A stretch of 64,000 bases of DNA from IMG/VR virus record IMGVR_UViG_3300032287_003113, positions 1-64,000 of that record; one strand, 5' to 3'. Under the pieces are notes generated by a model. It saw only the letters and a list, made by a program, of their open reading frames with translations. It did not search any database and was not told the DNA's origin. Both the position numbers and the translations under genes were made by a program. This document shows, one piece after another, positions 12,874 through 41,401 of this stretch. The first letter of the stretch is position 1. Each line of letters starts with the position of its first letter.

Positions 12874-12898
12874 CAACTACCACAAATTTATTTATACT

Positions 12899-26300: not shown

Positions 26301-27287
26301 TTATGCTTTGATAATTCCGTCGATTAGGCCTGGATAGAAGAAGTCGCGATACTTGTCGTATAGCGGAGCAACAGCTTGTTTGAATTTATCTGTATCTTCT
26401 TTGTTTAGTTCTGTGTAAGTTACGCCAATGTCGCTGTGATCTTTTTTAGCAGCAAACGCTTCAGCTTCCTCAACTGACCACTTGCGTTCTAGGCGACTAG
26501 CGTATTTGCATGCTTCGCTAAACTTGGCTTGTTCATCTTCGCTTAATGTAGCTAAGAATTTGTTGCCAATAATAATACTAGTCAAGAACAAATTGTGTTT
26601 GGTGTTGACCATGTACCTCTTGCTTGTATTCTTGAACTGTGCTAGGTAACGTGGAATAGTTGTTTCGAGAGCATCGGCACCAATGCCTTCTTGTTTGAAA
26701 AAGTCTGGGTCAAGATATAGATCTCGCATTGAAAAAACTTGCGGAATAGCACCAATGGCTTCGCAAGTGTCAACAGTTACAGGATTATTTGTTGTGGCGA
26801 ACCCAATACCGCTTAGACTATCTAAATCGCTGATTGGTTTTTCGCTAACGATACAGCGGAATCCACCTGAATATGTAAACTCCATACCTATAGCTGGACT
26901 TTTGTCTTTTAGGCCGTCTAACATCTTACGACCAATTGGGCCTTCTAGTACACGTTTTGCATGATCGTGATCTTGGAAAATAAACGGCATTTCCAATGCC
27001 AAAAACTCCGGGCTATGCCAACGAGCTAAATCAACAACATGCATTTGACTCATTTGAATATCGCCGGAGTCAATTAACATCATTGGGTCAGCTTTAAAAT
27101 ATAATGATGAATCTCTCATTTTTTTGTCAGGATATTTGTTGCTGTATTCTTTTAAAGTAAAAATTTCTACTTCAAATTTGCCGTCGGTTAATTCGGCAAT
27201 TTTTTCTTTAAATGCTTCGGCTGTGCGTAGGAACAAATTTATAGGTTCGTGTGCGATTAACCAGGTGATTTTTTTCTTTTGATTCAT
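26301..27287 (-). CDS. TRAP DctP-family solute-binding protein without signal peptide
   Basis: F.E.I.ELTDGKFEVEIF, GDIQM, LEMPFIFQD.DHA, GGFR. Confidence 0.8.
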   Translation of the reverse strand: MNQKKKITWLIAHEPINLFLRTAEAFKEKIAELTDGKFEVEIFTLKEYSNKYPDKKMRDSSLYFKADPMMLIDSGDIQMSQMHVVDLARWHSPEFLALEMPFIFQDHDHAKRVLEGPIGRKMLDGLKDKSPAIGMEFTYSGGFRCIVSEKPISDLDSLSGIGFATTNNPVTVDTCEAIGAIPQVFSMRDLYLDPDFFKQEGIGADALETTIPRYLAQFKNTSKRYMVNTKHNLFLTSIIIGNKFLATLSEDEQAKFSEACKYASRLERKWSVEEAEAFAAKKDHSDIGVTYTELNKEDTDKFKQAVAPLYDKYRDFFYPGLIDGIIKA

Positions 27288-27340
27288 GGGATTCTCCAAT
27301 AGGATTTTGTATTATATATTTATACTTGCGCCTAGGATTC

Positions 27341-27591
27341 AATAAGTTTGGGCACATTAAAATCTGCTTTTCGACTGTGGACCACAATGCCAACGGGTCG
27401 CTATCCCGCATTAAATGGCTTGCTCTCCCGAGCATTTTTCATGGAATCTCGATCGCTGTTGCTGTTTTAAAATTGCTTGTACCCTCGGGAGTACCCGATT
27501 TAACATGCCATGCCACGGGGCCAATACTACCTACTGCAACAGGACTACCACAAGTATCAGATGGTCGCCACACCATGTGCCCAAACTTATT
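27341..27591 (-). ncRNA. Candidate ~250-nt structured ncRNA
   Basis: Perfect 17-bp terminal inverted repeat, several internal helices, own promoter. Confidence 0.65.
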
Positions 27592-27603
27592 AACTCGTAT
27601 ACT

Positions 27604-27632
27604 AGTATACACTATATGTCTATGTTATGCAA
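27604..27632 (-). promoter_or_regulatory. sigma70-type promoter for the ncRNA candidate
   Basis: TTGCAT-N17-TATACT. Confidence 0.6.
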
Positions 27633-28008
27633 CCCAGCCCTGTCCGGAAATTGCATGGAACCAGGGATAAAATGAGCTGGGGATATCAAACTGCCATGTA
27701 CCTTCCTGATCAATCCATGCTGTTGGTGGCTGTGCCAAATGTTGATATCGTGGTAATACTTCTGTGCCGTTTACCGTTAATAGTTTGATCTCCACTGCAC
27801 CGCCGTTTGCGTCTACCACTGTACATTTTAAGTTTATAGGGCTAAACAAATCTATACTATAGTTAGTGTCTAGGTCCGTTATCAAATGTCCATTGAGACG
27901 CATACGATAATGTATGTTGCCGTGGGCAACTATGACCAATCGTACTTGCAATTGATCCGAGGTTTTAATATCCAATACGTCGGAGAAAGTGTTTATATCT
28001 TGGTGCAT
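27625..28008 (-). CDS. Hypothetical protein
   Basis: 127 aa; ends FYPWFHAISGQGW; overlaps the radical SAM gene. Confidence 0.55.
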   Translation of the reverse strand: MHQDINTFSDVLDIKTSDQLQVRLVIVAHGNIHYRMRLNGHLITDLDTNYSIDLFSPINLKCTVVDANGGAVEIKLLTVNGTEVLPRYQHLAQPPTAWIDQEGTWQFDIPSSFYPWFHAISGQGWVA

Positions 28009-29260
28009 AATCTAGTATCGTGTTGTTCCTGATTGTTTCAAAACTTTTTAAGAAACTGACTAATTCTTTCAGTGATTCCTCTGCATCTGCAGGCGGGGTG
28101 TATGTTTTAACAAACTCCAGGTACTCAGTGGCCAACTGTGCAATAATCTCGTGACTTAAATCACTTCTGCGAGTATTCACTTGCGGAGTATACGATCCTA
28201 ATCGATCAACCACAGCCTGTAACTTTGCAACGGTTTCTTGTCTGATATCGTCTGGCATCAGTTCCATACGCAAACAACGTGGTTGGTGCAATATGTTACA
28301 GCTCTCGGCGATAATGTTGTGTTCGATCATGAACTCAAAAACTTGGTCCAGTTCGCTGATAGTAAACAAGTTAGGAGTGATACGTAGTTCTAGTTTTAAT
28401 CCGGGATTACGATCACGCAAGGCCACAAACTTGAGAATGTTTGCCAAGATCTGATCAGTAGGTCCTGGATAACGCACATAATCGTTTAATGACGTAACTG
28501 ACTCTATACTGATACCTAGATGAAACTCTTGGAATCTAGGTATCAATTGTTCTATACGTTCATCGTATATTGTGCCGTTGGTAGTTGTGCCAACTATTAG
28601 ATCTTGTCCATCCAAGTGCTCGCAAATGTCGTAGAAGGCTTGATTATATAATGTTTCTCCACCCAGGAAGTGTATGTAACGTATGTATGGAAACGATTTT
28701 AACTCTGCAACAAAGCGATTGACTGTTGCTGAATCTTCAGTCCAAGACTGATACGGCTTGGGTTCAGCAAATAATCGACTATCCAGCTTGTTTAATTTTT
28801 TATAGTCTGCAACAAGACGTGAGCTTGCTGTGGGGTCGCACATGATACAGGCACTATTACAAGTATTACCTAGGTCTATTTGTAAATCTGTTGGAAAATG
28901 TGGGCTGGCACCCGCATGACTGTTGCTGTATTCAAATACAGGCAAGTGTGGGCTAGAACGAAAGGTTAATGGAAACTCTGCAAGACCAATAGCACTTTTG
29001 TTTAGTTGTCTAACACGACCCGAAAGTTTTCCAAACTGATCTTGGTAGTAACAAGGCTCACACTCTTTGGGTTTGTTGCCGGCTAATAGTTGTTGACGCA
29101 GGTCTCTCATGGGCCCACTGTTGTAAAAATCCATCAGCGAAGTTGTGCGTATGTTGAAGTCGGTAGCACCGTTTTTGCTCCAGCGACACACATCATAACT
29201 ACCATCGTAAGTTAATCTAATGTGGAACCAGGGACTTGAACAGAATGTGTTTTTTAACAT
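27965..29260 (-). CDS. Radical SAM protein with N-terminal twitch-like domain
   Basis: FCSSPW...C...CEPC; CNSACIMC; LGGETL. Confidence 0.88.
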   Translation of the reverse strand: MLKNTFCSSPWFHIRLTYDGSYDVCRWSKNGATDFNIRTTSLMDFYNSGPMRDLRQQLLAGNKPKECEPCYYQDQFGKLSGRVRQLNKSAIGLAEFPLTFRSSPHLPVFEYSNSHAGASPHFPTDLQIDLGNTCNSACIMCDPTASSRLVADYKKLNKLDSRLFAEPKPYQSWTEDSATVNRFVAELKSFPYIRYIHFLGGETLYNQAFYDICEHLDGQDLIVGTTTNGTIYDERIEQLIPRFQEFHLGISIESVTSLNDYVRYPGPTDQILANILKFVALRDRNPGLKLELRITPNLFTISELDQVFEFMIEHNIIAESCNILHQPRCLRMELMPDDIRQETVAKLQAVVDRLGSYTPQVNTRRSDLSHEIIAQLATEYLEFVKTYTPPADAEESLKELVSFLKSFETIRNNTILDYAPRYKHFLRRIGY

Positions 29261-29265
29261 ATATT

Positions 29266-29355
29266 TGGCGGAGAGTCAGGGATTCGAACCCTGGATAATA
29301 TTGCTACTATGCCGGTTTAGTAGACCGGTGCCTTCAGCCGCTCGGCCAACTCTCC
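29266..29355 (-). tRNA. tRNA-Ser(ACU), unusual A34 anticodon
   Basis: Long variable arm, G73, CCGGT-CTACTAA-ACCGG, CCA end. Confidence 0.9.
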
Positions 29356-29382
29356 ATAAATACTTTTTTATAAAGGCAAAAC

Positions 29383-29658
29383 ATGAAAAAATTAATATTT
29401 CTATTGGCAACATTCTTTTATGTTTCTGCCATGGCTTTTACTACTCAAAAACCTGTTGACTGTTTTGGAACACCTGAAGTTACCAAAATGCTACGAGAAG
29501 AATTCAACGAAGTCATCATATTTGACAGTATCAACAACCTGACCGGCAAAAGCAGAATTTCTTTGTTTGTAAATTCTAAAACTGGAACATGGACCTTGGT
29601 TGAATACGACAACGACAATGCCTGCATTTTAGGTGCTGGTCAAAGTCGTTCCACCTGA
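29383..29658 (+). CDS. Small secreted protein
   Basis: Signal peptide, two Cys, TGTWTLVE...ACIL. Confidence 0.65.
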   Translation: MKKLIFLLATFFYVSAMAFTTQKPVDCFGTPEVTKMLREEFNEVIIFDSINNLTGKSRISLFVNSKTGTWTLVEYDNDNACILGAGQSRST

Positions 29659-30080
29659 CTGACTTCCACGCCCGACTTAGTTAAAAAATCAACGCCGGTG
29701 GTATCTCTGTAGGCTGTGCCAAACCACACCCGAGCTATACCACTTTGATATATCAGTTTGGCACAGTCTAAGCAAGGGCTGTGAGTAACAAATAGATCAG
29801 CACCATGCCCAGACTCATTGCTACGTGCCAGTTTTGCGATAGCATTTGTTTCAGCATGGAGAACTTCTGGTTTGGTTTTAAGTTCATGATGTCCATCCTC
29901 TCTAAGTTCTATTATTTCTTCGCAGTCATTGTCCCAACCGGCGGGCATGCCATTATAACCAATACTGATGATCCTATCATCCTTGACCACAATAGCACCC
30001 ACATGCAATCTACGAGCGTGACTGAGTTCAGCAAATGTTCTTGCTGTTTGCATGTAGGCTTGTACTAACTTGTCTTTCAT
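29640..30080 (-). CDS. dCMP deaminase (ComEB-like)
   Basis: VGAIVV, SIGYNG, HAETNAI, SPCLDC. Confidence 0.88.
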   Translation of the reverse strand: MKDKLVQAYMQTARTFAELSHARRLHVGAIVVKDDRIISIGYNGMPAGWDNDCEEIIELREDGHHELKTKPEVLHAETNAIAKLARSNESGHGADLFVTHSPCLDCAKLIYQSGIARVWFGTAYRDTTGVDFLTKSGVEVSQVERL

Positions 30081-30295
30081 TTTACCTTGGCCAGATAATC
30101 GACTACATTTAAGTGGCCTTTTTGTGCTTCCAACAATGCGTCCACTGCTGTGACATGAGCTCCGGATTCTCTAGCACGGATTTTAAGTTCACGCACCCGC
30201 TGGGCGGCTGCAACAACTAGGTCAAACCGGCCAACACCTGTTTTGTCAATACATTTTTCAACATCTACTTCTGATGCACGAGTTTCTTTTCTCAT
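30077..30295 (-). CDS. rpoZ: RNA polymerase omega subunit-like protein
   Basis: VEKC...GRFDLVVAAAQRVREL...VDALLE. Confidence 0.7.
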   Translation of the reverse strand: MRKETRASEVDVEKCIDKTGVGRFDLVVAAAQRVRELKIRARESGAHVTAVDALLEAQKGHLNVVDYLAKVK

Positions 30296-30303
30296 TTTTT
30301 GCC

Positions 30304-31383
30304 TTAGTTTAAAAAATAATCATTTAGAATGGTTGTGTCTACTTTAAAGTTCTCTTTTATTATAACACGTTTATCTATATCTTGCAAGATCTTTATCAGA
30401 TTACCGTAAGCTGAGTTAGCCACTTTTTGGAAGTGTAGTCTATTATGGTAGCTTGGTGCAGGATTGCCTGCTGTGAGCAAACTCTTAACTAGATGGTCTG
30501 CACGTTCTTGTGGATATGGTACACTATCGTAGGTTTCATCTATAGTATCGCCGAAGGTTTCAAATCCTAACTCTCGGATCTTGGCCAGGCTATGTTGTCC
30601 ACCGTAGACCACAAACGGGTGACCTAGCATTAGACTCTTGTAGGTCTTTTCGGTTGGGAACCATTCGTTCTGTGTGGTTTCACTGGCTATGCTTATCGTG
30701 GTATTGTAGTAGTGACTAGGATAGTAGGCATAGAAACGAAAGTCCGGATGTACAAATGGATCAGGCCAATCTTGATCTGGTCCAAAGCCGTCTGCACTTT
30801 TACCTGACCTATGACTCCATATACTGGCATCAAGTAGCCCGGCTGTTTTAAATAATTCAAAGAATCGTTCTCTATTGGTGCGCCATTCTCCATTTAAGAA
30901 CAGGAACCGGTGCGTCTTTACTGCTGTGTCAATTTGATTGCATGTGTACTCTAATCTGGCACGATTAAACTCATTGTTGATAATCCACGCAAAGAACTCG
31001 GGCATGTTATAGTTCTTTGCATAACCGTCAATATCCCAATCGCCACACTTGATTAAGTATCCATCAATATTTTTTGCTTGCAGTTGCTCTGCGGTTGGGC
31101 AAAAACTTGCCGATAAGGTTGCATAGCTTTCACTTGGATAATAAAATACAATCTTGTTGTTGTGTCCTGCGGCACGATCAATTATGGCTTGAGCAATATC
31201 GTGTCCGGGATCACCACAGGCTGTCTCCATAACAAAGCAGTCTGTGACAATGGTAGCACCGTCAGGTATTGCACTCACATCAGACTCCACGTAATCCACA
31301 CCGTGCAGAGACAGAGTAGCACGTAATAAATCCGCTTGTTTTTCGGCTGGACGTTTGAGTGGATGTAATATTAGATATAACAT
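30304..31383 (-). CDS. Hypothetical protein, TEKT-motif family (GT10-like)
   Basis: FLFLNG..R, ISIASET, FPTEKTYKSL..GHPF, LGFETF...IDETYD. Confidence 0.6.
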   Translation of the reverse strand: MLYLILHPLKRPAEKQADLLRATLSLHGVDYVESDVSAIPDGATIVTDCFVMETACGDPGHDIAQAIIDRAAGHNNKIVFYYPSESYATLSASFCPTAEQLQAKNIDGYLIKCGDWDIDGYAKNYNMPEFFAWIINNEFNRARLEYTCNQIDTAVKTHRFLFLNGEWRTNRERFFELFKTAGLLDASIWSHRSGKSADGFGPDQDWPDPFVHPDFRFYAYYPSHYYNTTISIASETTQNEWFPTEKTYKSLMLGHPFVVYGGQHSLAKIRELGFETFGDTIDETYDSVPYPQERADHLVKSLLTAGNPAPSYHNRLHFQKVANSAYGNLIKILQDIDKRVIIKENFKVDTTILNDYFLN

Positions 31384-31432
31384 GGATTTTTCATAAATAT
31401 TTAATCAAACATTCCCCGTTGGAAAATATTAT

Positions 31433-32062
31433 ATGAAAAATCTTGTCTACTATCCAGATTTGCCCTCAATTCCTGAACACCTGTTGGTTGATGTTGAAAA
31501 AATAGTGTTAGAACGTATTGCCAATGATCCGCCACATCCAAATCCGTTGTGTCAAAGAGAAATGGCTGTTTCTCGCGGTGAAGAAAAAATTGTAGGTGGG
31601 CGATATCGCGGAGACGAAGCAGATGAACCACTACAATCTTGGGTTAGAGAAAATATTGGTGATGATCTAGCACCAAAAGCACGAGTACGGATTGCCAGCC
31701 ACGGGGAACAAGGAAATTTAAGTGTTCCACACAGTGATGCTTCTAGAGATTGGAGTCTGTTATATCTTGTCAATTTAGGTGGTGACAACGTGGAAACAAT
31801 TTTTTGGCAAGAAAAAAATCAACCAGTGAGACGACCAAATGCAACTTTTCCTCCTAGCTATGATGATTTGATTGAACTAGAACGTGTGACATTCCCTAGT
31901 CATACTTGGGTCATGCTTGACTCATTGGTTTTACACAGCATAGAAAACATGGAAAGTTTGCGTATAGCAGTACAGGTAGGATTCAAAGACGGTAGCACAA
32001 CTCTACAAAAAATTTGGCCTGAAAGAGATTGGTCTGAACTACAAGTGCCATATTCTAATTAA
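31433..32062 (+). CDS. 2OG-Fe(II)/cupin-like oxygenase
   Basis: PHSD...LHSIEN..R facial-triad pattern. Confidence 0.55.
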   Translation: MKNLVYYPDLPSIPEHLLVDVEKIVLERIANDPPHPNPLCQREMAVSRGEEKIVGGRYRGDEADEPLQSWVRENIGDDLAPKARVRIASHGEQGNLSVPHSDASRDWSLLYLVNLGGDNVETIFWQEKNQPVRRPNATFPPSYDDLIELERVTFPSHTWVMLDSLVLHSIENMESLRIAVQVGFKDGSTTLQKIWPERDWSELQVPYSN

Positions 32063-32064
32063 TT

Positions 32065-32295
32065 TTAAACAGCACCATTCTTTATTGTCAATAACATAGT
32101 TTCGTAGCTGGCATTAAATGCATGAATTGTTGTTGAGCAACAGGCCAAATAAGTTTGATTTTTTATTTCTTGACTGTTGCTAGCCACAAAACAATGTTGT
32201 CCAAACGCCGCAGGATAAAATTGCACAGTTGAATTTGTTTCAATATCAAATTTAATTGTTTGTCCAGGTTCCAGTATCAACTCCATATTTTGCAC
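32065..32295 (-). CDS. Hypothetical protein
   Basis: 76 aa, overlaps the upstream gene. Confidence 0.45.
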   Translation of the reverse strand: MQNMELILEPGQTIKFDIETNSTVQFYPAAFGQHCFVASNSQEIKNQTYLACCSTTIHAFNASYETMLLTIKNGAV

Positions 32296-33008
32296 CCTAG
32301 ATGTTGATTTTTTTGTGCATCAAAATTCATAATAAGAGTGTATCGTGGAAGATTGCTAAGATTGGCAGTATGATGCGGAATCCCCCAATCCCAGGTAAAC
32401 GCTTGCCCTTGTTTCCAAAAGCCAAAATTATGATTTCCAATGATAAAATATTGTCCGGGAACATGGTCTTCTAAAAATACTACCAACCTACGTTCTCCAG
32501 GATCTCGATAAGGATCTGTTTGATCTGTTGTGTTATTGTAAACATGATCTATGTGGTCCATGGTAACATCGCCTGGACGTTGGATAGCTACACGTAACAT
32601 AACATTGAGCATGTGATTACCGTGACTTTTTATAATCTTGACTCCCAATTGCTGTTCAACTGTGGCAACAATGTCAGGGCACTGGTCTGTGTCAATATAA
32701 TGACTGGTAAACCAAGGACGGCTTTTATCAAATATTTTACCTGTCAAATCCGGCAATGCTTTATCAAAGTCTGCTTGTAAAATTGGATTGTTAAATTTTT
32801 TAGAAGAGTCTGAATAAAAATTTCCATCAAATGTCTTTGATCTTGTTGATTTCGTTTTTAACTCCAACAGAGCCTGACAAACATCTGCTGACAAAGTACG
32901 ATCAATGTGTATATAGTCTGATCCATGTTGCGATGGCTTATTGATATCGAAATGCCAATGTCCTTTGTTAAAATGCACAATTGATCTTGGTGTAAGTTTA
33001 ACGGTCAT
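32277..33008 (-). CDS. 2OG-Fe(II)/Asp-beta-hydroxylase-like oxygenase
   Basis: QRPG...HID, VFLED..PGQ, W..G, PHHTAN....RYTL. Confidence 0.65.
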   Translation of the reverse strand: MTVKLTPRSIVHFNKGHWHFDINKPSQHGSDYIHIDRTLSADVCQALLELKTKSTRSKTFDGNFYSDSSKKFNNPILQADFDKALPDLTGKIFDKSRPWFTSHYIDTDQCPDIVATVEQQLGVKIIKSHGNHMLNVMLRVAIQRPGDVTMDHIDHVYNNTTDQTDPYRDPGERRLVVFLEDHVPGQYFIIGNHNFGFWKQGQAFTWDWGIPHHTANLSNLPRYTLIMNFDAQKNQHLGCKIWS

Positions 33009-33011
33009 GAT

Positions 33012-33959
33012 TTATTTTTGACCCAATGGTAGCCAAATTTTTCTTAGACGTTCTATGTGTCGATTAAATCCTGCAGTGGTTGTTTCGTCTGGATTTGAAA
33101 AAATAAAATTTTCATTATGATAGAGTTTTACTTCATCAGTTTCTAATGCCCGGCTAAACGTTGTTTGATACCAAGACACAATTTCAGGCGGTGTACCAGG
33201 AGGCAACATCAGTGCCCATGCTGCAAAAATATCAATGCCTTTTCCTTTGATCCTCAATGGTTCTACCATTGGTAGTTTGGCCAGTTTTTTATCTCCAGTA
33301 ATAGCAATAATTTTTACTTTACCAGCTTCTATCAACGGACGGGCAACACTAATTGGCATGATGCCAAATTCAATATTAGATTCCGATGCTACACCGGTCA
33401 CAGCTTGCAACGGACCTTGAAAGTTTACATGGCCGACTAAATTTTTATTTGCTTCTCCGTTGAGTATAATATATTCAAGCGCCAAGCGATGTACTGGACT
33501 ACCTACTGCAACATTAACTGGTTTTCCAGGACTTTTTATATATGATAAAAATTCAACAGGTGTATTTACACGACTACCGGGGTGTGCCACTATCGCTAAT
33601 GGACTTTTTGCCATGCCCATCACATTGGTAAAACTGTTGTATTCCCAACGCTTCAGATCTTTTTGCCAGATATCATTGCCTATGTAGGTTGCAAAATAAC
33701 TGGGAACACTGATGGTGTATCCATCAGGTGCAGCTTCATACAATGCATTACTGGCCAACACAGTATCTGCACCAGGTTTGTGTTCTATTATATATTGAAA
33801 GGTTGGATGACTTTTCTGTACTTGCGTGGCCAGCAATCGAAACTGAATTTCGTTGCCGCTGCCGGGAGCGAATCCAATTATTACTCTCACGGGTTTGGTG
33901 GGTTCCCATGCCCAGGCCATGATAGGAACCATAAGAAAAACAAACAATAATTTTTTCAT
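33012..33959 (-). CDS. Bug/TctC tripartite tricarboxylate transporter substrate-binding protein
   Basis: Signal peptide, PTKPVRVIIGFAPG, EHKPGA, APDGYT, PPGTP. Confidence 0.88.
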   Translation of the reverse strand: MKKLLFVFLMVPIMAWAWEPTKPVRVIIGFAPGSGNEIQFRLLATQVQKSHPTFQYIIEHKPGADTVLASNALYEAAPDGYTISVPSYFATYIGNDIWQKDLKRWEYNSFTNVMGMAKSPLAIVAHPGSRVNTPVEFLSYIKSPGKPVNVAVGSPVHRLALEYIILNGEANKNLVGHVNFQGPLQAVTGVASESNIEFGIMPISVARPLIEAGKVKIIAITGDKKLAKLPMVEPLRIKGKGIDIFAAWALMLPPGTPPEIVSWYQTTFSRALETDEVKLYHNENFIFSNPDETTTAGFNRHIERLRKIWLPLGQK

Positions 33960-33981
33960 TTTTTCTCCGATTAATTGATTT

Positions 33982-34530
33982 TTACAACAAAAACAAATTT
34001 GATATTTCAGTCGGTAACCAAGGTGTGTTCATACGTTCTGGATGCCAAACTACACCTGCAATACGTTGATCGATCCAAGCTTCGCAGTGACCACTGCTGT
34101 CATACACTAGTCCAGTTGCAGTTGAATGTAGTTGTGCAATAGCCTGGGTGTGATACGAATTTACTGTGTGTTCTTGTCCAAAATATTCAACGGCGTGTTC
34201 TGTGTCCATGTGACCTTCACATGCATTAACCTGTCCGCCCAGTGCATCTGTAAGTAAAAATGCGCCATGACAAACTCCCAAAATTGGTTTCTGTTGTTTC
34301 ATCACAGCAGTGGCCAATTTAAATTCAACAGTTCGTCTGATTGCACTATCGTCACCGCCGGTGATAATCAAACAGTCGTGACCGTCGGCTAATTGTTCAA
34401 AATCTTGATCGAGTCTATTGGGAATAAAAGAAAGCGTGTGATTTTTTAAATAACGATACCAACCGTGTTCTATGCTATCGTATGCCCTACCTTTGTGATA
34501 CAGAACTCTTTGTGTAAGAGCTATCTTCAA
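33982..34530 (-). CDS. Class I glutamine amidotransferase (peptidase C26/PuuD-like)
   Basis: ITGGD, ILGVCHG, VNSYH, WHPE. Confidence 0.88.
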   Translation of the reverse strand: MKIALTQRVLYHKGRAYDSIEHGWYRYLKNHTLSFIPNRLDQDFEQLADGHDCLIITGGDDSAIRRTVEFKLATAVMKQQKPILGVCHGAFLLTDALGGQVNACEGHMDTEHAVEYFGQEHTVNSYHTQAIAQLHSTATGLVYDSSGHCEAWIDQRIAGVVWHPERMNTPWLPTEISNLFLL

Positions 34531-34531
34531 A

Positions 34532-35242: not shown

Positions 35243-35317
35243 AGGAATCTCTCCAAATTAATTCAGTATATGTATTTATGTTTATTTGCAATTTATAAAA
35301 CATAAATAGTTTACTCA

Positions 35318-35911
35318 ATGGATAAAAAATGGTTTTTTTACGGCTGTGCTGACAATGAGTTTACTGTTACGTATGCTCTGTATGAGCACACTTCTGACTG
35401 TTTTTTTCTAGTAGATACAGACGAAAAATCCATGAAAGATTTGGCTTTTTTGTTTTCCAGTAGATATCAACTAACAATTTGCCAGCTTAACACCGCACAC
35501 AATTATTTACCTGAGCTAATAGACAATACAGTATGTGTAAATTGGACTTTGACCAACAAACAAGACATTCCTATCGCTAGATTTCCACGTCCACATATGA
35601 TTGTTTCCGCAGAAGGCCTGGTTGAAAAATCGAATAACAATTTGCCATGGAATTACAACAACGAACAAAATTACTTGATGGCTGCAAAACATTGGTTGTC
35701 CCACCCTGCACTCAAAGGATATCCTACTGCTCTTGCTCACTGGGGTGATTTTTACCACACTTCTTCAATGGTGCCAGGAGCACCATTTGAAAATCGATTT
35801 GTATATACATTGTCCCAAATTAAAAAAATAATTTATCAAGAATTCGATCTACCAACTGCTCACCAAAAAATTAATCAACTGTTGACGACATATGAATTTG
35901 ATATACATTAA
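35318..35911 (+). CDS. Hypothetical protein
   Basis: 197 aa; CATAAATA late-type motif upstream. Confidence 0.55.
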   Translation: MDKKWFFYGCADNEFTVTYALYEHTSDCFFLVDTDEKSMKDLAFLFSSRYQLTICQLNTAHNYLPELIDNTVCVNWTLTNKQDIPIARFPRPHMIVSAEGLVEKSNNNLPWNYNNEQNYLMAAKHWLSHPALKGYPTALAHWGDFYHTSSMVPGAPFENRFVYTLSQIKKIIYQEFDLPTAHQKINQLLTTYEFDIH

Positions 35912-37043
35912 TAGCAGAGTCGATTTGACTGCATACGAAAAACAGCTAGGCATTCAGTTCTGTCAAGAGTTTACAAACTATCAAACTATTTCTCAACAGC
36001 TATGGTATGAACAACATTTCCCACACAATCGTTCTGGAGTTGATCCAATTTGGAGTCTTCAAACCCCCAAAAAATACCAACTGTGTTTGCCCTCCTTTTG
36101 TCATAACAAAACATTTGAGGATATCACAGATCAACGTGCAATCGAATTAATCAATCGTTGCCAACAAAAAAATCAACCCATGTTTATTACGTGGTCGGGC
36201 GGGATTGACAGTACTTTGATAGTTGCTGCATTATTTAAACATGCCGATCGAGAATATCTAAAACAGATAACTGTGCTAATGAACAATTCCAGTTATTATG
36301 AGAATCCTGTATTTTTTGATCGTATAATTTCTCCTTATTTTTCCTACAACAATATTGATCATGCAATTTGTCATTGGAAAGATTCTGTTGTTGTTAGCGG
36401 ACAACCGGCAGATCAAATGTGGATTCACGCAGATATTGTCAAACTTGAAAATCGCTTTCCAGGGGCCGGAGATATTGACCCACACACTGATCCGGATTTG
36501 CTATTGGATTTTCTTTCAAAAAAAAGCAATAAGAATCATGCTGAATGGTTTTATTGGCTAGTTTTAAATACTGCTGCCGAAGCAAAAATTTCAATTGTTA
36601 GCTATAGAGATTTTTTCTGGTGGGCAAATTTTAATTTTTACACCGTGGGAAACTGTTTAAAATCATACCTGGCTGAAGCTGAATGTTTCAACAACGAACA
36701 GTTTTTATTGTATCAGCAAAATTACATACCCTGGTTCTTGACAGACGACTACCAATTTTGGAGCATACACAATAACAATACTGGAGTTAAAATGTTGCAG
36801 GGCCTAGGAAGCTACAAATTGGTTGCAAAAAAATATATACTGGAAGTAGATAATAATCAATACTACTATCATTACAAATACAAAACAGGCAGTCCCAACC
36901 AGCATTTGTTTGCACAGAAAAAAACTACCGAAGATAAAATTAAAAAAGTTTTTGCGTTATATGATGATGGATCTGCTGTTATGTCAGATGATTCCAAGTC
37001 AATTGGTCAATTAATTTTGAACAATATCAATCTTTATCATTGA
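35892..37043 (+). CDS. Adenine-nucleotide alpha-hydrolase (PP-loop) protein
   Basis: WSGGIDST, VVSGQPADQ, K..AKKYI; resembles asparagine synthetase C-domain. Confidence 0.7.
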   Translation: MNLIYINSRVDLTAYEKQLGIQFCQEFTNYQTISQQLWYEQHFPHNRSGVDPIWSLQTPKKYQLCLPSFCHNKTFEDITDQRAIELINRCQQKNQPMFITWSGGIDSTLIVAALFKHADREYLKQITVLMNNSSYYENPVFFDRIISPYFSYNNIDHAICHWKDSVVVSGQPADQMWIHADIVKLENRFPGAGDIDPHTDPDLLLDFLSKKSNKNHAEWFYWLVLNTAAEAKISIVSYRDFFWWANFNFYTVGNCLKSYLAEAECFNNEQFLLYQQNYIPWFLTDDYQFWSIHNNNTGVKMLQGLGSYKLVAKKYILEVDNNQYYYHYKYKTGSPNQHLFAQKKTTEDKIKKVFALYDDGSAVMSDDSKSIGQLILNNINLYH

Positions 37044-37066
37044 TCAAATAATAAATACCTATTCCC

Positions 37067-38362
37067 ATGCAAAACAAAATAGAACATACCTCCGTTGCCG
37101 GTGTTAACTTTGAACCTAATAAAAAACTGGGCTACTATTTGGTCGACAACCAAATCTATTACAACAAATATCATGCGTTATTAAACGCATCTAAACAGAA
37201 ACAATCTATAAAATGGTTCTTTAACGAAGATGTGTTTGTACGTTACCCGTGGCACATTGAACCAGAAGAATCTTTAGATGAGTTGTATCGTCAAAGAGCA
37301 CAACAACTTAGAGATGAATATGATTATATTCGAGTGGAGTCCTCGGGTGGGTCTGATAGCACTACAGTTATTTTTAGTTTTCTACTTAATAACATACCAC
37401 TAGACGAAGTGGTATTTCGATATCCCAAAGGTGGAGACAAGGATGTAGTAGGAAATGCTCGAGACCTACGCAGTGAAAATACTCTAAGCGAATGGGAGTT
37501 TGCAGCAAAACCGTTGCTAGATTGGATTGCTACAAACTATCCTGGTGTTAAAATTACTGTGTATGATTACGCAGGAACTTTAGTGCGTGAAGCCGAAGAG
37601 AAGGATGAAAGTTGGGTGTTCCGTACTAGACACTATTTACAACCCGGTCACATAAACAAATACCAAGCCATAGCCATAGACGACCATAAACGGTTAGTTG
37701 AAAAGAACCTGCGGATTTGTGTGTTATGGGGTGTTGATAAACCTAAAATTACTGTCAAAGACGGAAAGTTTTTTTTATATTTTCATGACGGGCAAGCCAG
37801 TCATAGCGATCAAGCGATAGGCGAATACACCAACATAACCAATGAATTTTTTTATTGGAGCCCTGACGCCTGCAAATTATTGGCCAAACAAGCACATTCA
37901 ATAAAAAACTGGTTTGAAATGCCCGCCCACTATAATATGCAAAACGTATTACATTGGCCCAATTCAAACTTTAGTGGTAGAACTATCTACGAACAAATTG
38001 TTAAAAGTGTAATTTATTCTAAATACGATTTGCAAACATTTCAAACCAATAAGCCAACTAACAATATTTGGAACGAAATGGATTATTGGTTCCATCACAA
38101 TTTTAAAGATACTCAAGCATATCGTGTATGGGAATCTGGTATTGACTATTTGATCTCTACCTTGGATCCTGCATTTGTTGAAAACCTACACGGTCGACCG
38201 ACCAATATCATGATGTTTGAAACCCCAATGTATTATTTTGGAGATAGCAATATACCTAATTTGGCCTTGCCGTTCACTCCCGGGGCAGATCTTAAAGAGA
38301 AAAGAGTCGATTCTTCTAAGCAACATAGACACGTGATCAACGGACGCCTGGTAATTTATTAA
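37067..38362 (+). CDS. PP-loop (ANH) protein, paralog A
   Basis: LYRQRAQQLRDEYDYI..SGGSDS, GVDKP, EFFYW. Confidence 0.7.
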   Translation: MQNKIEHTSVAGVNFEPNKKLGYYLVDNQIYYNKYHALLNASKQKQSIKWFFNEDVFVRYPWHIEPEESLDELYRQRAQQLRDEYDYIRVESSGGSDSTTVIFSFLLNNIPLDEVVFRYPKGGDKDVVGNARDLRSENTLSEWEFAAKPLLDWIATNYPGVKITVYDYAGTLVREAEEKDESWVFRTRHYLQPGHINKYQAIAIDDHKRLVEKNLRICVLWGVDKPKITVKDGKFFLYFHDGQASHSDQAIGEYTNITNEFFYWSPDACKLLAKQAHSIKNWFEMPAHYNMQNVLHWPNSNFSGRTIYEQIVKSVIYSKYDLQTFQTNKPTNNIWNEMDYWFHHNFKDTQAYRVWESGIDYLISTLDPAFVENLHGRPTNIMMFETPMYYFGDSNIPNLALPFTPGADLKEKRVDSSKQHRHVINGRLVIY

Positions 38363-38363
38363 T

Positions 38364-38439
38364 TGGTGCCCTGGGTAGGATTCGAACCCACAATGTCCGC
38401 TCGGTAAAGCGGTGACTATACCATTTTGTCTACCAGGGT
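38364..38439 (-). tRNA. Non-canonical tRNA (6-nt anticodon loop, identity uncertain)
   Basis: T-arm GTGGGTTCGAATCCTAC, CCA end, anticodon arm CCGCT-TTACCG-AGCGG, A1:C72 mismatch. Confidence 0.7.
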
Positions 38440-38441
38440 GT

Positions 38442-38516
38442 TGGTTGCGGGGGACAGATTCGAACTGTCGATCTCCAGGTTATGAGCCTGACGGGTTGCC
38501 TCTTCCCTACCCCGCG
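38442..38516 (-). tRNA. tRNA-Met(CAU), initiator-like
   Basis: CGCGGGG 5' end, C1:A72 mismatch, CT-CAT-AA loop. Confidence 0.88.
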
Positions 38517-38521
38517 ATAAA

Positions 38522-39124
38522 CTACATTGCAGGACCGTTGCCGTTCCTAAATCCTATTTCACCGCCTTCAGCTTCGATACGCTTGACGACATCTTCGAAC
38601 AAGATAGGTGCAAAATCAGTTTGTTCCACACACACGCAATGATAACGGACATCAATCCATTGCCTTACTCCGCGGGTCATAAACTCGTGTGTGGTTTGTG
38701 CTGTTTTCATCACACGATTGGCGTGAGTGTGTCCGTGGATGTTGACACCAAAACGACCCAGGCTTTCCTCATGGATAGGGATATGACTGAGTATCATTCC
38801 GTTCATCACATGGTAAGCACGAAGCTCACGGAAGTGTTCACGATAGTCGGTGTCCTTGAAGATATCGTGGTTACCGCGGATAAGAACCTTGTCTCCGTTG
38901 AGCCTACGCATGATAGCAAGACTCTTGCGGCTCATAACAACATCGCCCAAGTGATACACTTTGTCGTTGGGCCTTACACGCTCGTTCCAGGCTGCGACCA
39001 TGAACTCGTCCATTTCCGCTGGATCGGTCCAAGGACGTAGTTTGGTCACACCATCGTTGCGTGTGAAGCGACATACACCTGCGTGTCCAAAATGCGTGTC
39101 GCTGACTAAAAATACTGCTGGCAT
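38522..39124 (-). CDS. Calcineurin-like metallophosphoesterase
   Basis: SDTHFGH, HLGD, GNHD, HGHTH. Confidence 0.9.
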   Translation of the reverse strand: MPAVFLVSDTHFGHAGVCRFTRNDGVTKLRPWTDPAEMDEFMVAAWNERVRPNDKVYHLGDVVMSRKSLAIMRRLNGDKVLIRGNHDIFKDTDYREHFRELRAYHVMNGMILSHIPIHEESLGRFGVNIHGHTHANRVMKTAQTTHEFMTRGVRQWIDVRYHCVCVEQTDFAPILFEDVVKRIEAEGGEIGFRNGNGPAM

Positions 39125-39147
39125 ACGTGCTTCCTTTCTTTAAAATT

Positions 39148-39225
39148 TGGAAGTGAGGGTCGGATTTGAACCGACGGTTTTAGGGATTTGCAGTCCCTTG
39201 CATTGGGCCACTCTGCCACCTCACT
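39148..39225 (-). tRNA. tRNA-Cys(GCA)
   Basis: AGGGA-CTGCAAA-TCCCT, U73, CCA. Confidence 0.92.
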
Positions 39226-39233
39226 ACTGTTAC

Positions 39234-39307
39234 TGGAGCGGGATATCGGAATCGAACCGATGACGAAAGATTGGAAATCTTTAGTTTTGCCCCTAAACTA
39301 ATCCCGC
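39234..39307 (-). tRNA. tRNA-Gly(UCC)
   Basis: AAAGA-TTTCCAA-TCTTT, U73, CCA. Confidence 0.92.
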
Positions 39308-39322
39308 TTAGGATTTACCACT

Positions 39323-39396
39323 TGGCGGGTCGCAAAGGAATCGAACCTCTACCCGCGGTTTTGGAGACCGCTGTTCTGCCACTAAACTAGCAACCC
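39323..39396 (-). tRNA. tRNA-Trp(CCA)
   Basis: GCGGT-CTCCAAA-ACCGC, G73, CCA. Confidence 0.92.
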
Positions 39397-39403
39397 ATAA
39401 TAC

Positions 39404-39479
39404 TGGCGCTCCCGACCGGATTCGAACCGGTGTACTCGCCGTGAAAGGGCGATGTCCTAGGCCTCTAGACGACGGGAGC
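39404..39479 (-). tRNA. tRNA-Glu(UUC)
   Basis: TCGCC-CTTTCAC-GGCGA, CCA. Confidence 0.92.
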
Positions 39480-39485
39480 CTAACT

Positions 39486-39569
39486 TGGTGGAGAATACTG
39501 GGATCGAACCAGTCGTGCCATAGGCGCCGGATTTACAGTCCAGTGCATCACCATTGATGCTTCTTCTCC
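39486..39569 (-). tRNA. tRNA-Tyr(GUA)
   Basis: CTGGA-CTGTAAA-TCCGG, long variable arm, CCA. Confidence 0.92.
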
Positions 39570-39575
39570 AAAACT

Positions 39576-39652
39576 TGGCGGAGTAGACGGGACTCGAACC
39601 CGCGACCCTCGGCGTGACAGGCCGATATTCTAACCAACTGAACTACCACTCC
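39576..39652 (-). tRNA. tRNA-Asp(GUC)
   Basis: TCGGC-CTGTCAC-GCCGA, CCA. Confidence 0.93.
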
Positions 39653-39661
39653 AATACTACT

Positions 39662-39690
39662 ATTATACATTAAACGGATTTAATGGTCGG
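39662..39690 (-). promoter_or_regulatory. Promoter for the tRNA array
   Basis: TATAAT ~9 nt before tRNA-Asp; degenerate -35 CCGACC at 17-bp spacing. Confidence 0.6.
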
Positions 39691-39760
39691 TACTCACTGC
39701 TTATCGTAGATTGTTTGCCCAAAAAACGTACCGGTCATTTTCATAACCTCAATCCACTTA

Positions 39761-39928
39761 TCAGCGTGGGGGGTATTTCGACCCCCTTGCAGAATTCTTT
39801 ACTGTTGCAAGTTCTGCCAACGCTTTTATTTGTGCTTCTACTCTTGCTAACTTTGCTTCTAGTAACGCCGCTTTATCTTCCGGTGAGAGGACAAAATGCG
39901 AAAACTCTTTTTTAATTTTGCGTTCCAT
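39761..39928 (-). CDS. Small coiled-coil protein
   Basis: MERKIKK... with AGGAG RBS. Confidence 0.55.
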   Translation of the reverse strand: MERKIKKEFSHFVLSPEDKAALLEAKLARVEAQIKALAELATVKNSARGSKYPPR

Positions 39929-39946
39929 TTGCTTCTCCTTTATAAA

Positions 39947-39980
39947 CAAAAAACCCCGGAGTGTTTAATTCCAGGGTTTT
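39947..39980 (-). terminator. Intrinsic terminator/attenuator hairpin
   Basis: AAAACCCTGGA...TCCGGGGTTTTTTG. Confidence 0.75.
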
Positions 39981-40005
39981 GGTTAAAATACGGTAATATG
40001 TATGT

Positions 40006-40104
40006 CTATCCAACACCCTTCAAGTGCTCTAAATTGCGATCAAGCCAACGGCCTAGCACACACAGCACTACGGTCGCATAAATTTCATGAAGGTAATTTT
40101 TCAT
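40006..40104 (-). CDS. Putative leader peptide (32 aa)
   Basis: MKNYLHEIYATVVLCVLGRWLDRNLEHLKGVG between a consensus promoter and a terminator. Confidence 0.45.
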   Translation of the reverse strand: MKNYLHEIYATVVLCVLGRWLDRNLEHLKGVG

Positions 40105-40113
40105 TGTTTTCAT

Positions 40114-40142
40114 ATTATACAATTATTTATCTTTATTGTCAA
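40114..40142 (-). promoter_or_regulatory. Consensus sigma70 promoter
   Basis: TTGACA-N17-TATAAT. Confidence 0.85.
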
Positions 40143-40145
40143 CCT

Positions 40146-40442
40146 CTAGGCTGACATAATAGCGATAGTGCTTTTAACAAACCTATATTTGGCAACAAAG
40201 GCATTGATAAAACTGATCCATTCTTCGGCGGCAGATTGATCAGTGAACAGCCTAGTCGATATCAATGATGAACCTTTGCTCTCAACCATCGTATCTGCGG
40301 ACATTTTGCCAACAGCAATCATTTCCGCAGTCTTTGCATCTAATTCGGCTAACGCTACAGAATCATTTTCATTTCTATCGTTTGGATTCGAGTTAATATA
40401 ATTATCTCTTTGCCAGGTAATTTTAACTTTTTTTGTGTACAT
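40146..40442 (-). CDS. Hypothetical protein
   Basis: 98 aa; R.FTDQSAAEEW motif; follows the split dctP. Confidence 0.55.
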   Translation of the reverse strand: MYTKKVKITWQRDNYINSNPNDRNENDSVALAELDAKTAEMIAVGKMSADTMVESKGSSLISTRLFTDQSAAEEWISFINAFVAKYRFVKSTIAIMSA

Positions 40443-40445
40443 ATT

Positions 40446-41401
40446 TTAAGCCTTTTTAATCTTGTCAATCAAACCAGGTGAAAATGTTGGTTCAAACTTT
40501 TCATAAACTGCTTGAGCTTTATGTTTCCACTCAGCTGTTTCTTCTTTGGAAAGTTCAATAACATCAATACCATCAGCAACCAATTGCTGTTTGGCATCTT
40601 CACCATCCTGGATCGTGACTTCACGTTCTCTACGTCCTGCTTTGATAGCAGCATCCTTGATCACGGCTTGAACCTCGGGACTCAATGTCTTCCAGAAGTC
40701 GTCACGCATGATCATGGTTGTCAAAAACAAACTGTGCTTTGAGTCAATCACGCTTTTGGTAACGTCATTCTGCTTCAAGGGATAGATACGACTGTAAACA
40801 GTTTCTCCACCTTCGCAATCACCTTCGATAATGTGGGCACGAGTGTCTTCGGTTTCACAAACAAACACGTCAACACCGCCCAAGACCTTGAATGTCTCTT
40901 GTGCTACTGGATTACGATTGGTTCTTAGCTTCATTTCTTGCCTAGATCATCTAGACCAGAGACTGGTTTGTCAACAATAATGTTACGGAAACCGCCTGAG
41001 TAAGTGAATGCCATACCGCGAACATTGGACTTTTCAGTGATCTTTTCTAATAGACCTTCGCCAACTTCACCCTCTAGCACACGAGTTGCATGATCGTGAT
41101 CTTCAAAAATAAATGGCATTTCTAAGGCCAACATATCGTGCTCAATATCTTCAGCCAACCATGTGGTGTACATTTGGCTCATTTCAATCTTGCCCTGTTC
41201 CATTAGGTCCAGTAGATCGTGTTTGGTAACCAACACACCGTCGTTGTACTTCATGCTGTACTCGCTTAGTGTCATAACTTCAACTTCGATCTTTTCTGCA
41301 CTTTGAGCTTCGTTTACAAAACGCTGAAAGTCTTCTGCTGCACGTACAAATAGGCTTAGTGGCTCGTGAGCAATTACCCAACGAATTTTAGTAGTTTTCA
41401 T
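40446..41401 (-). pseudogene. DctP-family solute-binding gene split by a 1-nt frameshift (40931-41401 plus 40446-40934)
   Basis: The halves are colinear with the intact paralog at 26301; the junction AAG AAA TGA AGC would read KKMKLR with one extra A. Confidence 0.7.

Follow-up and report, generated by a model that had tools for sequence, protein, structure and literature searches.

In this study, we analysed a window of 64,000 nucleotides (positions 1 to 64,000 of the IMG/VR record IMGVR_UViG_3300032287_003113), which belongs to a tailed jumbo phage of roughly 357 kb. The window encodes two copies of a DctP-like (TRAP substrate-binding) protein, an intact copy A and a copy B made up of two ORFs, as well as two Bug/TctC-like proteins, a peroxiredoxin-fold protein ('Rdx'), PP-loop proteins ('PPl' with a paralogue, and 'P383') and a protein of unknown family ('P209'). 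The respective positions are listed in the table. In copy B, the order of genes is PPl, Bug2 and split DctP, and the PPl-TctC-DctP order recurs in viral loci.

Features of the window related to the DctP-like genes
Feature	Position	Strand	Length	Remarks
DctP-like copy A	26301..27287	-	328 aa	ATG at 27287; GGAG at 27297-27294; in-frame TAA at 27314-27312
TATAAATA box (T4-type late-promoter consensus)	27317..27324	-		30 nt upstream of the copy A ATG
Rdx, peroxiredoxin-fold partner gene	25770..26297	-	175 aa	GTG start 3 nt after the copy A stop
DctP-like copy B, N-half	40931..41401	-	156 aa	ATG at 41401
DctP-like copy B, C-half	40446..40934	-	162 aa	starts MKLRT; ATG overlaps the N-half stop (ATGA)
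Bug/TctC-like protein 2 (Bug2)	41527..42438	-		leader MKKLL...ATA; directly upstream of copy B; TTG-extended ORF reaches 42576
PPl, PP-loop-motif protein	42449..43639	-	396 aa	upstream of Bug2
PPl paralogue	37067..38362	+		
P383, PP-loop protein	35892..37043	+		
Bug/TctC-like protein 1 (Bug1)	33012..33959	-		leader MKKLLFVFLMVPIMAWA
P209, unknown family	31433..32062	+		

Assignment of the proteins was based on profile searches and structure models. Copy A scored 128.6 bits on Pfam PF03480 (cut-off 23.4), while the two ORFs of copy B matched positions 11-134 and 138-284 of the same profile. The AF2 model of copy A (pLDDT 87) matched TRAP binding proteins including SiaP, DctPAm and IseP at a TM of about 0.8. 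Bug1 and Bug2 scored 94.1 and 29.5 bits on PF03401 (cut-off 27). The TTG-extended ORF of Bug2 overlaps the upstream gene, and its real start is the one given in the table. Rdx matched PHROG 2281 and scored 24.5 bits on Pfam Redoxin, which is below the cut-off. Its Cys is not conserved among 29 homologues, and the family is very divergent with only two invariant residues. The SGGxDG/S motif is visible in the translation of PPl, whose family is virus-only with a weak QueC-like link. In P383, WSGGIDST is invariant. Its AF2 model (pLDDT 89.7) gave asparagine synthetase, beta-lactam synthetase, LarE and NAD synthetase as best fold matches, all of them weak (TM 0.3, E 6.5e-4). P383 is a recurrent neighbour of leaderless DctP genes in phages and bacteria. 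P209 had no Pfam or PHROG match; in Bdellovibrionota MAGs it lies in an MFS-P209-leaderless DctP arrangement.

The original prediction stated that both DctP-like proteins lack signal peptides whereas both Bug proteins have them, and this observation was confirmed. Both DctP-like genes start within a few residues of the first strand of the binding fold. An upstream start supplying a signal peptide, named beforehand as a refuting condition, was not found: in-frame TAA stop codons 8 and 22 codons upstream of copy A and of the N-half of copy B, respectively, leave no room for a leader. For copy A, the longest possible ORF starts from a TTG and adds only four residues (MENP), and for the N-half the ATG is the first ATG/GTG/TTG after the stop. 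The highest 9-residue Kyte-Doolittle value within the first 35-40 residues was 0.90 for copy A and 1.26 for the N-half, compared to 2.93 and 2.79 for Bug1 and Bug2 and 2.53 for an OMP-like ORF of the same phage, all three of which carry classic Sec-type leaders. The leader of Bug1 consists of MKKLL, a hydrophobic core and AWA. Neither DctP copy nor Rdx has a 19-residue window above 1.1.

The missing leader is a family trait and not an annotation slip or chance. Of the 120 closest database proteins, 116 start with MxQxxKI(R/T)WLIAHEP and thus show the same leaderless start, as do all 80 viral loci fetched out of 405 found. The nearest ESM Atlas clusters are 100% viral. In contrast, relatives at 35% identity or less carry hydrophobic leaders of 20-47 residues. 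In the tree, all viral copies and the leaderless bacterial copies lie on one side of a branch (93 rows, SH-aLRT 85), apart from the signal-bearing copies of Bdellovibrionota and Elusimicrobia, and the leader state needs only 3 changes over 136 rows.

The two copies belong to different classes. It had been noted that LRT in the split copy appears as FAT in the intact one, and this is correct: the PDB alignment places the KIRT strand of 4p47 on GFAT of copy A, so that Ala164 is found where SiaP has Arg-147, while the split copy has KLRT at that place and keeps the carboxylate-binding Arg. This position holds Arg in 96.8% of the family (PMC4646407). The second Arg of the pocket (R144, equivalent to SiaP Arg-127) is conserved. 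The association with the partner gene is perfect. Non-Arg viral copies have Rdx adjacent in 26 of 26 loci, and Arg copies have no Rdx in 33 of 33. Of these 33 Arg-type viral copies, 22 have a PPl or P383 gene within 1.6 kb and 9 have a TctC gene; 11 lack the PP-loop link, which rests on gene order only.

Modelling of the complex of copy A and Rdx supported binding, with a median score of 0.67 compared to 0.00 for the best control. This mark was reached by 58 of 80 solved complexes and by 2 of 110 mismatched pairs. The pLDDT of the partner was at least 82 and the agreement between runs at least 19%. However, this is a prediction made with our own alignments, one of three runs scored only 0.28, and the interface residues are no better conserved than the rest of the protein. 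The predicted interface covers residues 67-96, 128-173 and 312-317 and spans both lobes.

Copy B is a genuinely split gene and not a broken one, which the original prediction had missed together with the different classes and partners of the two copies. The same split is conserved in at least four phage genomes (handles G006, G007, L100 and L105). It is kept, with different junction frames, in relatives whose copy A proteins are 54-78% identical, and one relative has a duplicated C-half. The dN/dS was 0.15 for the N-half (against G007) and 0.08 for the C-half, compared to 0.075 for copy A, indicating purifying selection on both halves.

No TRAP or TTT membrane subunit, neither DctM, DctQ nor TctA, was found in the record of the window or in two CheckV-complete relatives, one of which encodes an identical copy A protein. 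The claim that both copies follow TAAATA late-type motifs is only half true. Copy A has the perfect box, whereas copy B has only TATATATA with one mismatch. The box looks like a real promoter element, since eight of its 9 copies in the 220-kb record lie on the coding strand within 80 nt upstream of gene starts, the portal gene among them.

Several known systems can be compared. DctP/SiaP-type TRAP binding proteins (PF03480) share the sequence family and the two-lobe fold, but the phage proteins have no export signal, the phage encodes no DctQ/DctM, copy A has Ala at the Arg-147 position, copy B is encoded as two polypeptides, and a subfamily-specific invariant set (HEP, DHxH and others) is present. 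In Tp0957 (TatP) of Treponema pallidum, the Arg-147 equivalent is also Ala (PMC4646407). In these 'TPAT' systems the binding protein works together with an extra soluble partner, TatT; however, Tp0957 is an exported lipoprotein still belonging to a membrane transporter, its partner is a TPR protein and not a thioredoxin-fold protein, and kinship was seen at the family level only. The three TctC-like genes of the phage have leaders and no TctA/TctB nearby or anywhere in the complete genome, like the orphan Bug receptors of Bordetella and other Betaproteobacteria (PMC5812351), but they are phage-encoded and repeatedly linked to a PP-loop gene and a leaderless DctP-like gene. Phage-encoded binding proteins used as auxiliary metabolic genes, such as cyanophage PstS, are likewise carried without the membrane parts. 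They keep their export signal and plug into the host transporter, a pattern which fits the Bug genes, while the DctP-like proteins, judged from sequence, cannot reach the periplasm by the Sec or Tat route. Periplasmic-binding-protein-type folds with cytoplasmic roles exist in LysR effector domains, HisG, THI5 and MqnA/MqnD, which belong to other fold classes or families. No cytoplasmic member of the DctP family, and nothing on the arrangement described here, turned up in the literature searched.

Other explanations were considered. A cytoplasmic sponge for a host metabolite or an immune signalling molecule, with incidental partner genes, is unlikely but possible: the proteins are leaderless, presumably high-affinity binding folds made by a phage, the late-type box of copy A would allow high expression, and phage sponges of other folds are known. 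However, the neighbours are metabolic enzymes (PP-loop, GATase, BKACE, SDR and AMP-binding) and not defence-related genes, leaderless relatives also sit in metabolic clusters of bacterial MAGs, and neither the obligate pairing with Rdx nor the predicted complex is needed for a sponge. Conversion of the fold into an enzyme, as has happened for other periplasmic-binding-protein folds, is considered equally unlikely. In favour of it, the family is highly conserved overall, and H13, E14, Q81, D106, H107, H109, R144, R213, H231 and R268 are invariant across the whole WxxAHEP subfamily but not conserved in the two closest solved DctP structures; His, Glu and Arg residues among them would be catalytic. 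The same residues are, however, invariant in the signal-bearing periplasmic members and therefore do not mark a cytoplasm-specific chemistry, no cofactor-binding or catalytic motif was recognised, and the fold matches are all to plain binding proteins.

It is even less likely that the proteins work outside the cytoplasm with a host TRAP membrane unit after reaching it by a non-classical route, for example release at lysis, piggy-back export or packaging into the virion. The late-type box and the location of the gene among structural genes in some marine relatives could point to this, and use of a host membrane partner cannot be excluded as the host genome is not known. Against it, neither the proteins nor Rdx have a leader or a hydrophobic segment, the phage uses ordinary leaders for the proteins it does export, the clade has been leaderless for a long time and includes bacterial chromosomal copies, and copy A lacks the Arg on which high-affinity TRAP transport depends (PMC4646407). 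Decaying remnants of captured host transporter genes without a function might be assumed from the interrupted copy, the missing leader and the absence of membrane subunits, but this is very unlikely and contradicted by the dN/dS values, the conserved split and the hundreds of viral contigs keeping full-length leaderless genes.

The interpretation given with the original prediction, cytoplasmic or virion-packaged ligand sensors or sponges, was thus partly supported. A cytoplasmic location is supported by the upstream stops, the conserved leaderless state in a large clade under purifying selection, the proper leaders of the Bug and OMP-like proteins of the same phage and the lack of DctQ/DctM in the complete genomes; it is strongly inferred, but from hydropathy, upstream stops and homology alone. 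A sensor-like, ligand-dependent partner switch fits the predicted two-lobe docking of Rdx, whereas nothing found here points to sequestration of a signalling molecule. For packaging into the virion there is no evidence, the only pointer being the late-type box of copy A. While the fold, the missing leader, its family-wide conservation, the gene linkages, the purifying selection and the absence of membrane subunits can be read from the sequences, the heterdimer of copy A and Rdx rests on a model only, a hand-over to PP-loop enzymes on gene order only, and ligand binding is likewise inferred.

The most likely explanation, to which we assign a probability of about 0.55, is that both genes belong to a large signal-less branch of the DctP family that has been taken out of the periplasm and uncoupled from any membrane transporter. 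In this view, the proteins are made in the cytoplasm of the infected cell, where they would still close around a small ligand but dock on soluble partners instead of DctQM. Copy A would belong to a virus-only sub-branch that replaced the carboxylate-clamping Arg with Ala, Tyr, Thr, Val or Ile and is always co-encoded with a peroxiredoxin-fold protein that has lost its catalytic Cys. The two most likely form a heterodimer in which the partner contacts both lobes, so that complex formation can report or exploit the ligand-bound state. Copy B would be made as two polypeptides, with the second reading frame restarting at the junction, and the two chains must reassemble into one fold. Its position beside a periplasmic Bug receptor and PP-loop enzymes, a fold class whose known members adenylate carboxylates, suggests that it holds or hands over a carboxylic-acid substrate for that pathway. 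Thereby, a nutrient-capture protein that normally works outside the cell membrane would most likely serve this phage and hundreds of related uncultured phages inside the infected cell as a cytoplasmic ligand-binding module, a role for which no description was found in the literature searched.

The window covers the first 64 kb of an IMG/VR virus record of 219,879 bp (G000). PHROG matches to a terminase, a portal, a tail sheath, a tail tube, a baseplate hub and a family-B DNA polymerase show a tailed myovirus, and since a 356,865-bp record rated complete by CheckV encodes an identical copy A protein, this is a jumbo phage. A metabolic island in the window includes 11 tRNA genes found with ARAGORN, one being a tRNA-Ser with anticodon ACT and another having an undetermined anticodon with a two-base call. 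Besides the two DctP-like copies and the two TctC/Bug genes, the island encodes a radical-SAM/SPASM enzyme, a dCMP deaminase, a class-I glutamine amidotransferase, an Asp/Asn-hydroxylase-like (cupin-type) ORF, a metallophosphoesterase, an adjacent AhpD-like (CMD family) and AhpC/TSA peroxiredoxin pair, and three ORFs with a PP-loop motif that match no Pfam or PHROG family. Many ORFs of about 400–460 aa in the record start with Cys-rich N-termini like that of the radical-SAM/SPASM gene, which was the only one of them checked against Pfam. Outside the island, a transketolase-like enzyme is encoded as two overlapping ORFs (TPP-binding part and pyrimidine-binding part) inside a sugar-nucleotide epimerase and glycosyltransferase cluster, an arrangement conserved in relatives, and a GroEL-like ORF of 539 aa was also found. 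A related 355-kb contig (L006) carries a gene with a precomputed Pfam RuBisCO_large hit next to glycosyltransferase and nucleotidyltransferase genes.

Coordinates of the features discussed (positions in the window unless another record is named)
Feature	Record	Position	Strand
Metabolic island	window	24–44 kb	
DctP-like copy A	window	26301-27287	-
DctP-like copy B, N-half	window	40931-41401	-
DctP-like copy B, C-half	window	40446-40934	-
TctC/Bug protein 1 (Bug1)	window	33012-33959	-
TctC/Bug protein 2 (Bug2)	window	41527-42438	-
PPl-TctC-DctP arrangement	window	40.4-43.6 kb	
Redoxin-like partner gene of copy A (Rdx)	window	25770-26297	
Exact TATAAATA box of copy A	window	27317-27324	
OMP beta-barrel-like ORF	window	25119-25619	
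Radical-SAM/SPASM gene	window	27965-29260	
tRNA-Ser (ACT) and tRNA gene with undetermined anticodon	window	29266-29355 and 38364-38439	
AhpD-like and AhpC/TSA genes	window	43648-44693	
GroEL-like ORF and small ORF just upstream of it	window	10885-12504 and 12508-12876	
Two-ORF transketolase-like enzyme	window	22668-23767	
ORFs with Cys-rich N-termini	G000	48872-50119, 116822-118111, 158667-165217	
Split DctP with two C-halves	L185 (G007); also L100 and L105	987-2479	
Gene with RuBisCO_large hit	L006	18539-19732	

The original prediction that both DctP-like proteins lack a signal peptide while both Bug proteins have one was confirmed. Copy A starts at an ATG preceded by GGAG, with an in-frame TAA only eight codons upstream, and the N-half of copy B starts at the first possible start codon after an in-frame TAA 22 codons upstream. 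An upstream start supplying a leader could therefore be rejected, because no start codon lies between these stops and the ATG. Both proteins run within a few residues into the conserved first strand, W-x-x-A-H-E-P. Their N-termini have no hydrophobic core (9-residue hydropathy maxima of 0.90 and 1.26), and no membrane-like segment was found anywhere in them. In contrast, both Bug proteins and the OMP-like ORF, which has a Sec-type leader and lies just downstream of the copy A/Rdx pair, start with MKK followed by a hydrophobic core (2.5–2.9; 2.8–2.9 for the Bug proteins) and AxA, so the phage does supply ordinary leaders where it wants export. The same leader was present in all 12 distinct TctC-like ORFs of the fetched loci, 11 from related viral loci plus Bug2. 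The absence of a leader in the DctP-like proteins is inferred from these simple measures, the stop codons and homology.

By sequence, both copies belong to the TRAP substrate-binding protein family. Against Pfam PF03480 (cut-off 23.4), copy A scored 128.6 bits and the two halves of copy B 56.8 and 81.8 bits. NCBIfam NF037995 scored 90.3, above its cut-off of 50, whereas TIGR00787 scored 101.5, below its cut-off of 175. The AF2 model of copy A had a pLDDT of 87.4 and showed the two-lobe TRAP-type fold, with Foldseek TM values of 0.72–0.82 to SiaP, DctPAm, IseP and many EFI structures. The two Bug proteins scored 94.1 and 29.5 bits on PF03401 (cut-off 27).

To see whether the leaderless state is a family trait, several searches were performed. 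A word-indexed search found 369 relatives, and of the 120 best (54–94% identical, mostly 315–335 aa) 116 begin M-x-Q-x-x-K-I-(R/T)-W-L-I-A-H-E-P. An exhaustive HMMER search of 1.84 billion cluster representatives gave 3,582 hits, of which the nearest clusters align from their own residues 1–5, while more distant ones, at 35% identity or less, carry 20–47 extra N-terminal residues with a hydrophobic core. IMG/VR holds 405 stretches encoding a relative, and all 80 that were fetched are leaderless, often with stops 6–25 codons upstream of the motif. The nearest ESM Atlas clusters are 100% viral. No cultured phage in INPHARED has a close relative; the only hits were at 25% identity or less, in unannotated fragments and in one Salmonella enterica contig where the match is an annotated DctP-family TRAP solute receptor. 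In GTDB genomes, relatives sit in MAGs of Bdellovibrionota, Elusimicrobia, Polyangia and others, in both signal-bearing and leaderless forms, although MAG binning may misplace some viral contigs. A maximum-likelihood tree of 136 proteins with leaders trimmed off, obtained with a quick search, puts all viral copies and most leaderless bacterial copies on one side of a branch (93 rows, SH-aLRT 85), and the leader state needs three changes. This tree is not rooted, but because the wider family is exported, loss of the leader is the parsimonious reading.

The whole W-x-x-A-H-E-P subfamily, including exported members, shares invariant H13, E14, P15, Q81, H107, H109, R144, R213, H231 and R268, but falls into two classes. 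At the position of SiaP Arg-147 most members have Arg together with Tyr83, the carboxylate clamp that is present in 96.8% of DctP proteins (PMC4646407). Copy B belongs to this Arg-type class, since its C-half begins MKLRT and the Arg falls in the aligned column. Copy A has Ala164 where 4p47 has the Arg of KIRT, and belongs to a well-supported (99) non-Arg sub-branch that is virus-only apart from one short MAG contig and has Ala, Tyr, Thr, Val or Ile (rarely Gly or Ser) at this position, mostly His or Gln at 83, and Trp at 270. These classes match the gene neighborhoods perfectly: every non-Arg viral copy (26 of 26) is adjacent to a redoxin-like gene of 150–245 aa, and no Arg-type viral copy (0 of 33) is. 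Instead, 22 of 33 Arg-type copies have a PP-loop-motif gene (PPl or P383) within 1.6 kb and 9 have a leader-bearing TctC gene, often in the order PPl-TctC-DctP exactly as in the window. In bacterial MAGs, leaderless copies lie in MFS-P209-DctP or BKACE-c79-P383-DctP-AMP-binding-SDR arrangements. Signal-bearing copies, among them those of the Bdellovibrionota MAG loci L029-L044, L052, L061 and L062, lie beside AMP-binding, MBOAT and NitT/TauT-type ABC transporter genes. None of these copies is next to DctQM, and the exported branch may also not be a classic TRAP receptor.

The gene downstream of copy A starts 3 nt after the copy A stop. It matches PHROG 2281 ('peroxyredoxin') but scores 24.5 bits on Pfam Redoxin, just below the cut-off of 26.6. 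The Cys at the peroxidatic position is present in only a few of 29 homologues, namely in this phage and a close relative (L095), and across 27–29 homologues only one Leu and one Trp (L119 and W123) are invariant. It is therefore a thioredoxin-fold protein that is probably not a peroxidase, and it is separate from the AhpC/TSA gene of the island. A complex prediction with controls supports binding, with a median score of 0.67 (runs 0.74, 0.67 and 0.28) against 0.00 for the best of three controls. That mark was reached by 58 of 80 solved complexes and by 2 of 110 mismatched pairs, counts which hold only roughly because we used our own alignments. Partner pLDDT is at least 82 and the runs agree in at least 19% of contacts. 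The predicted footprint on copy A covers residues 67–96, 128–173 and 312–317 and thus spans both lobes, as a transporter would contact a closed binding protein. Interface residues are not better conserved than average (0.59 against 0.61), which is neutral as support for the complex, so this remains a model.

Copy B is a real two-gene arrangement. The N-half stop and the C-half start overlap (ATGA), and the junction falls in the loop just before the strand carrying the Arg. A sequencing error or recent break could be rejected, because the same split is found in the complete record G006, whose copy A protein is identical, in the relative G007, whose copy A is 78% identical and where the junction is in a different frame with a 17-nt overlap, and in the viral loci L100 and L105, whose copy A proteins are 59% and 54% identical. 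A programmed frameshift is unlikely, since the frame offset differs between relatives while the ATG of the C-half is kept. dN/dS against G007 is 0.15 for the N-half and 0.08 for the C-half, compared with 0.075 for copy A. On the tree, the concatenated halves nest (99) among intact viral PPl-TctC-DctP copies. The halves do not correspond to whole lobes, so it is inferred that they must assemble into one fold. In G007, one N-half is followed by two different C-halves that are 70% identical to each other and each start MKIRTNRNP, which hints at exchangeable C-halves for one N-half.

No membrane subunits were detected: profile searches for DctM and DctQ (PF06808, PF04290) and for TctA (PF01970) gave no match in G000 or in the two complete related genomes G006 and G009, which each carry three TctC-like genes. 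The Bug genes are thus 'orphans', as most Bug genes are, of the kind known from Bordetella (PMC5812351), and could plug into a host TctAB, whereas the DctP-like proteins, as judged from sequence, cannot reach a host DctQM.

The original prediction had also placed both DctP-like genes behind TAAATA late-type motifs, which holds in full for copy A only. TATAAATA is not enriched in the window (4 found against 3.6 expected from shuffles). Only the position of the boxes genome-wide is informative: in the whole record, 8 of its 9 copies lie on the coding strand within 80 nt upstream of gene starts, although only 4% of the genome is intergenic. The portal gene and copy A are among them, and an exact box also precedes the small ORF just upstream of the GroEL-like ORF. 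This fits a T4-type late promoter for copy A, while copy B has only the one-mismatch variant TATATATA.

Taken together, the proteins are most likely cytoplasmic ligand binders of the TRAP fold whose docking partner has changed from a membrane unit to soluble proteins. The interpretation that they are cytoplasmic or virion-packaged ligand sensors or sponges was only partly supported. Copy A most likely forms a heterodimer with the Cys-less redoxin-fold protein and binds something other than a simple carboxylate, while copy B is most likely a two-chain, Arg-bearing and therefore probably acid-binding protein functionally tied to putative PP-loop enzymes. The SGGxDS(T) motif of PP-loop ATP pyrophosphatases is invariant in P383 (WSGGIDST) and present in PPl, but as to the adenine-nucleotide alpha-hydrolase fold of that family, the nearest fold matches of P383, to asparagine synthetase, beta-lactam and carbapenam synthetases, LarE and NAD synthetase, are weak (E 6.5e-4, TM 0.3), and PPl, P383, P209 and c41 gave no Pfam or PHROG match. 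The enzymes matched adenylate carboxyl groups. Together with the adjacent, presumably periplasmic Bug receptor and a glutamine amidotransferase, this suggests an import-capture-convert chain, which rests on gene order only. While family membership, the missing leaders, the gene linkages, the selection on both copies and the lack of membrane subunits in the genomes searched come directly from the sequences, the cytoplasmic location, ligand binding, expression, the heterodimer, the assembly of the halves and any enzymatic activity are inferred.

Alternatively, the proteins could act as a sponge, could have become enzymes, or could leave the cytoplasm by non-classical export or packaging, but each of these appears less likely. 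The fold is a DctP fold, unrelated to the families of phage small-molecule sponges (Tad1, Tad2 and Acb2 type), which sequester immune signalling nucleotides. Decay is contradicted by the selection data. A more far-reaching possibility, rather doubtful on present evidence but not excluded, is that leaderless DctP-fold proteins are a new kind of binding-protein-dependent system working inside the cell, in which the ligand-closed protein would dock on a soluble effector instead of a membrane transporter. The effector would be a Cys-less peroxiredoxin-fold protein for one class and a carboxylate-adenylating PP-loop enzyme for the other. Phages would use this to sense or channel a metabolite that their own periplasmic Bug receptors bring in through a host transporter, and the split copy, with exchangeable C-halves, would be a natural two-chain binding protein.

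By sequence and fold these are DctP-family proteins, but they lack three features that define a working TRAP receptor, namely export, a membrane partner and, for copy A, the Arg. The closest precedent for an Ala-type DctP protein with an extra soluble partner is the T. pallidum Tp0957 system, which is still exported. In the literature searched we found no description of phage-borne or cytoplasmic DctP proteins, which is not proof that none exists. The branch covers at least 405 IMG/VR contigs and dozens of clusters at 50% identity, and it offers a predicted heterodimer with a degenerate peroxiredoxin, a naturally split binding protein, and a recurring PP-loop–Bug–DctP gene trio of unknown pathway in uncultured jumbo and T4-like aquatic phages as concrete objects for study. 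It also warns against scoring such genes as 'transport' auxiliary metabolic genes in viromes. Since substrate-binding proteins of TRAP transporters are extracytoplasmic by definition, a large, conserved, mostly viral branch without export signals and without membrane partners would extend what this fold is used for.
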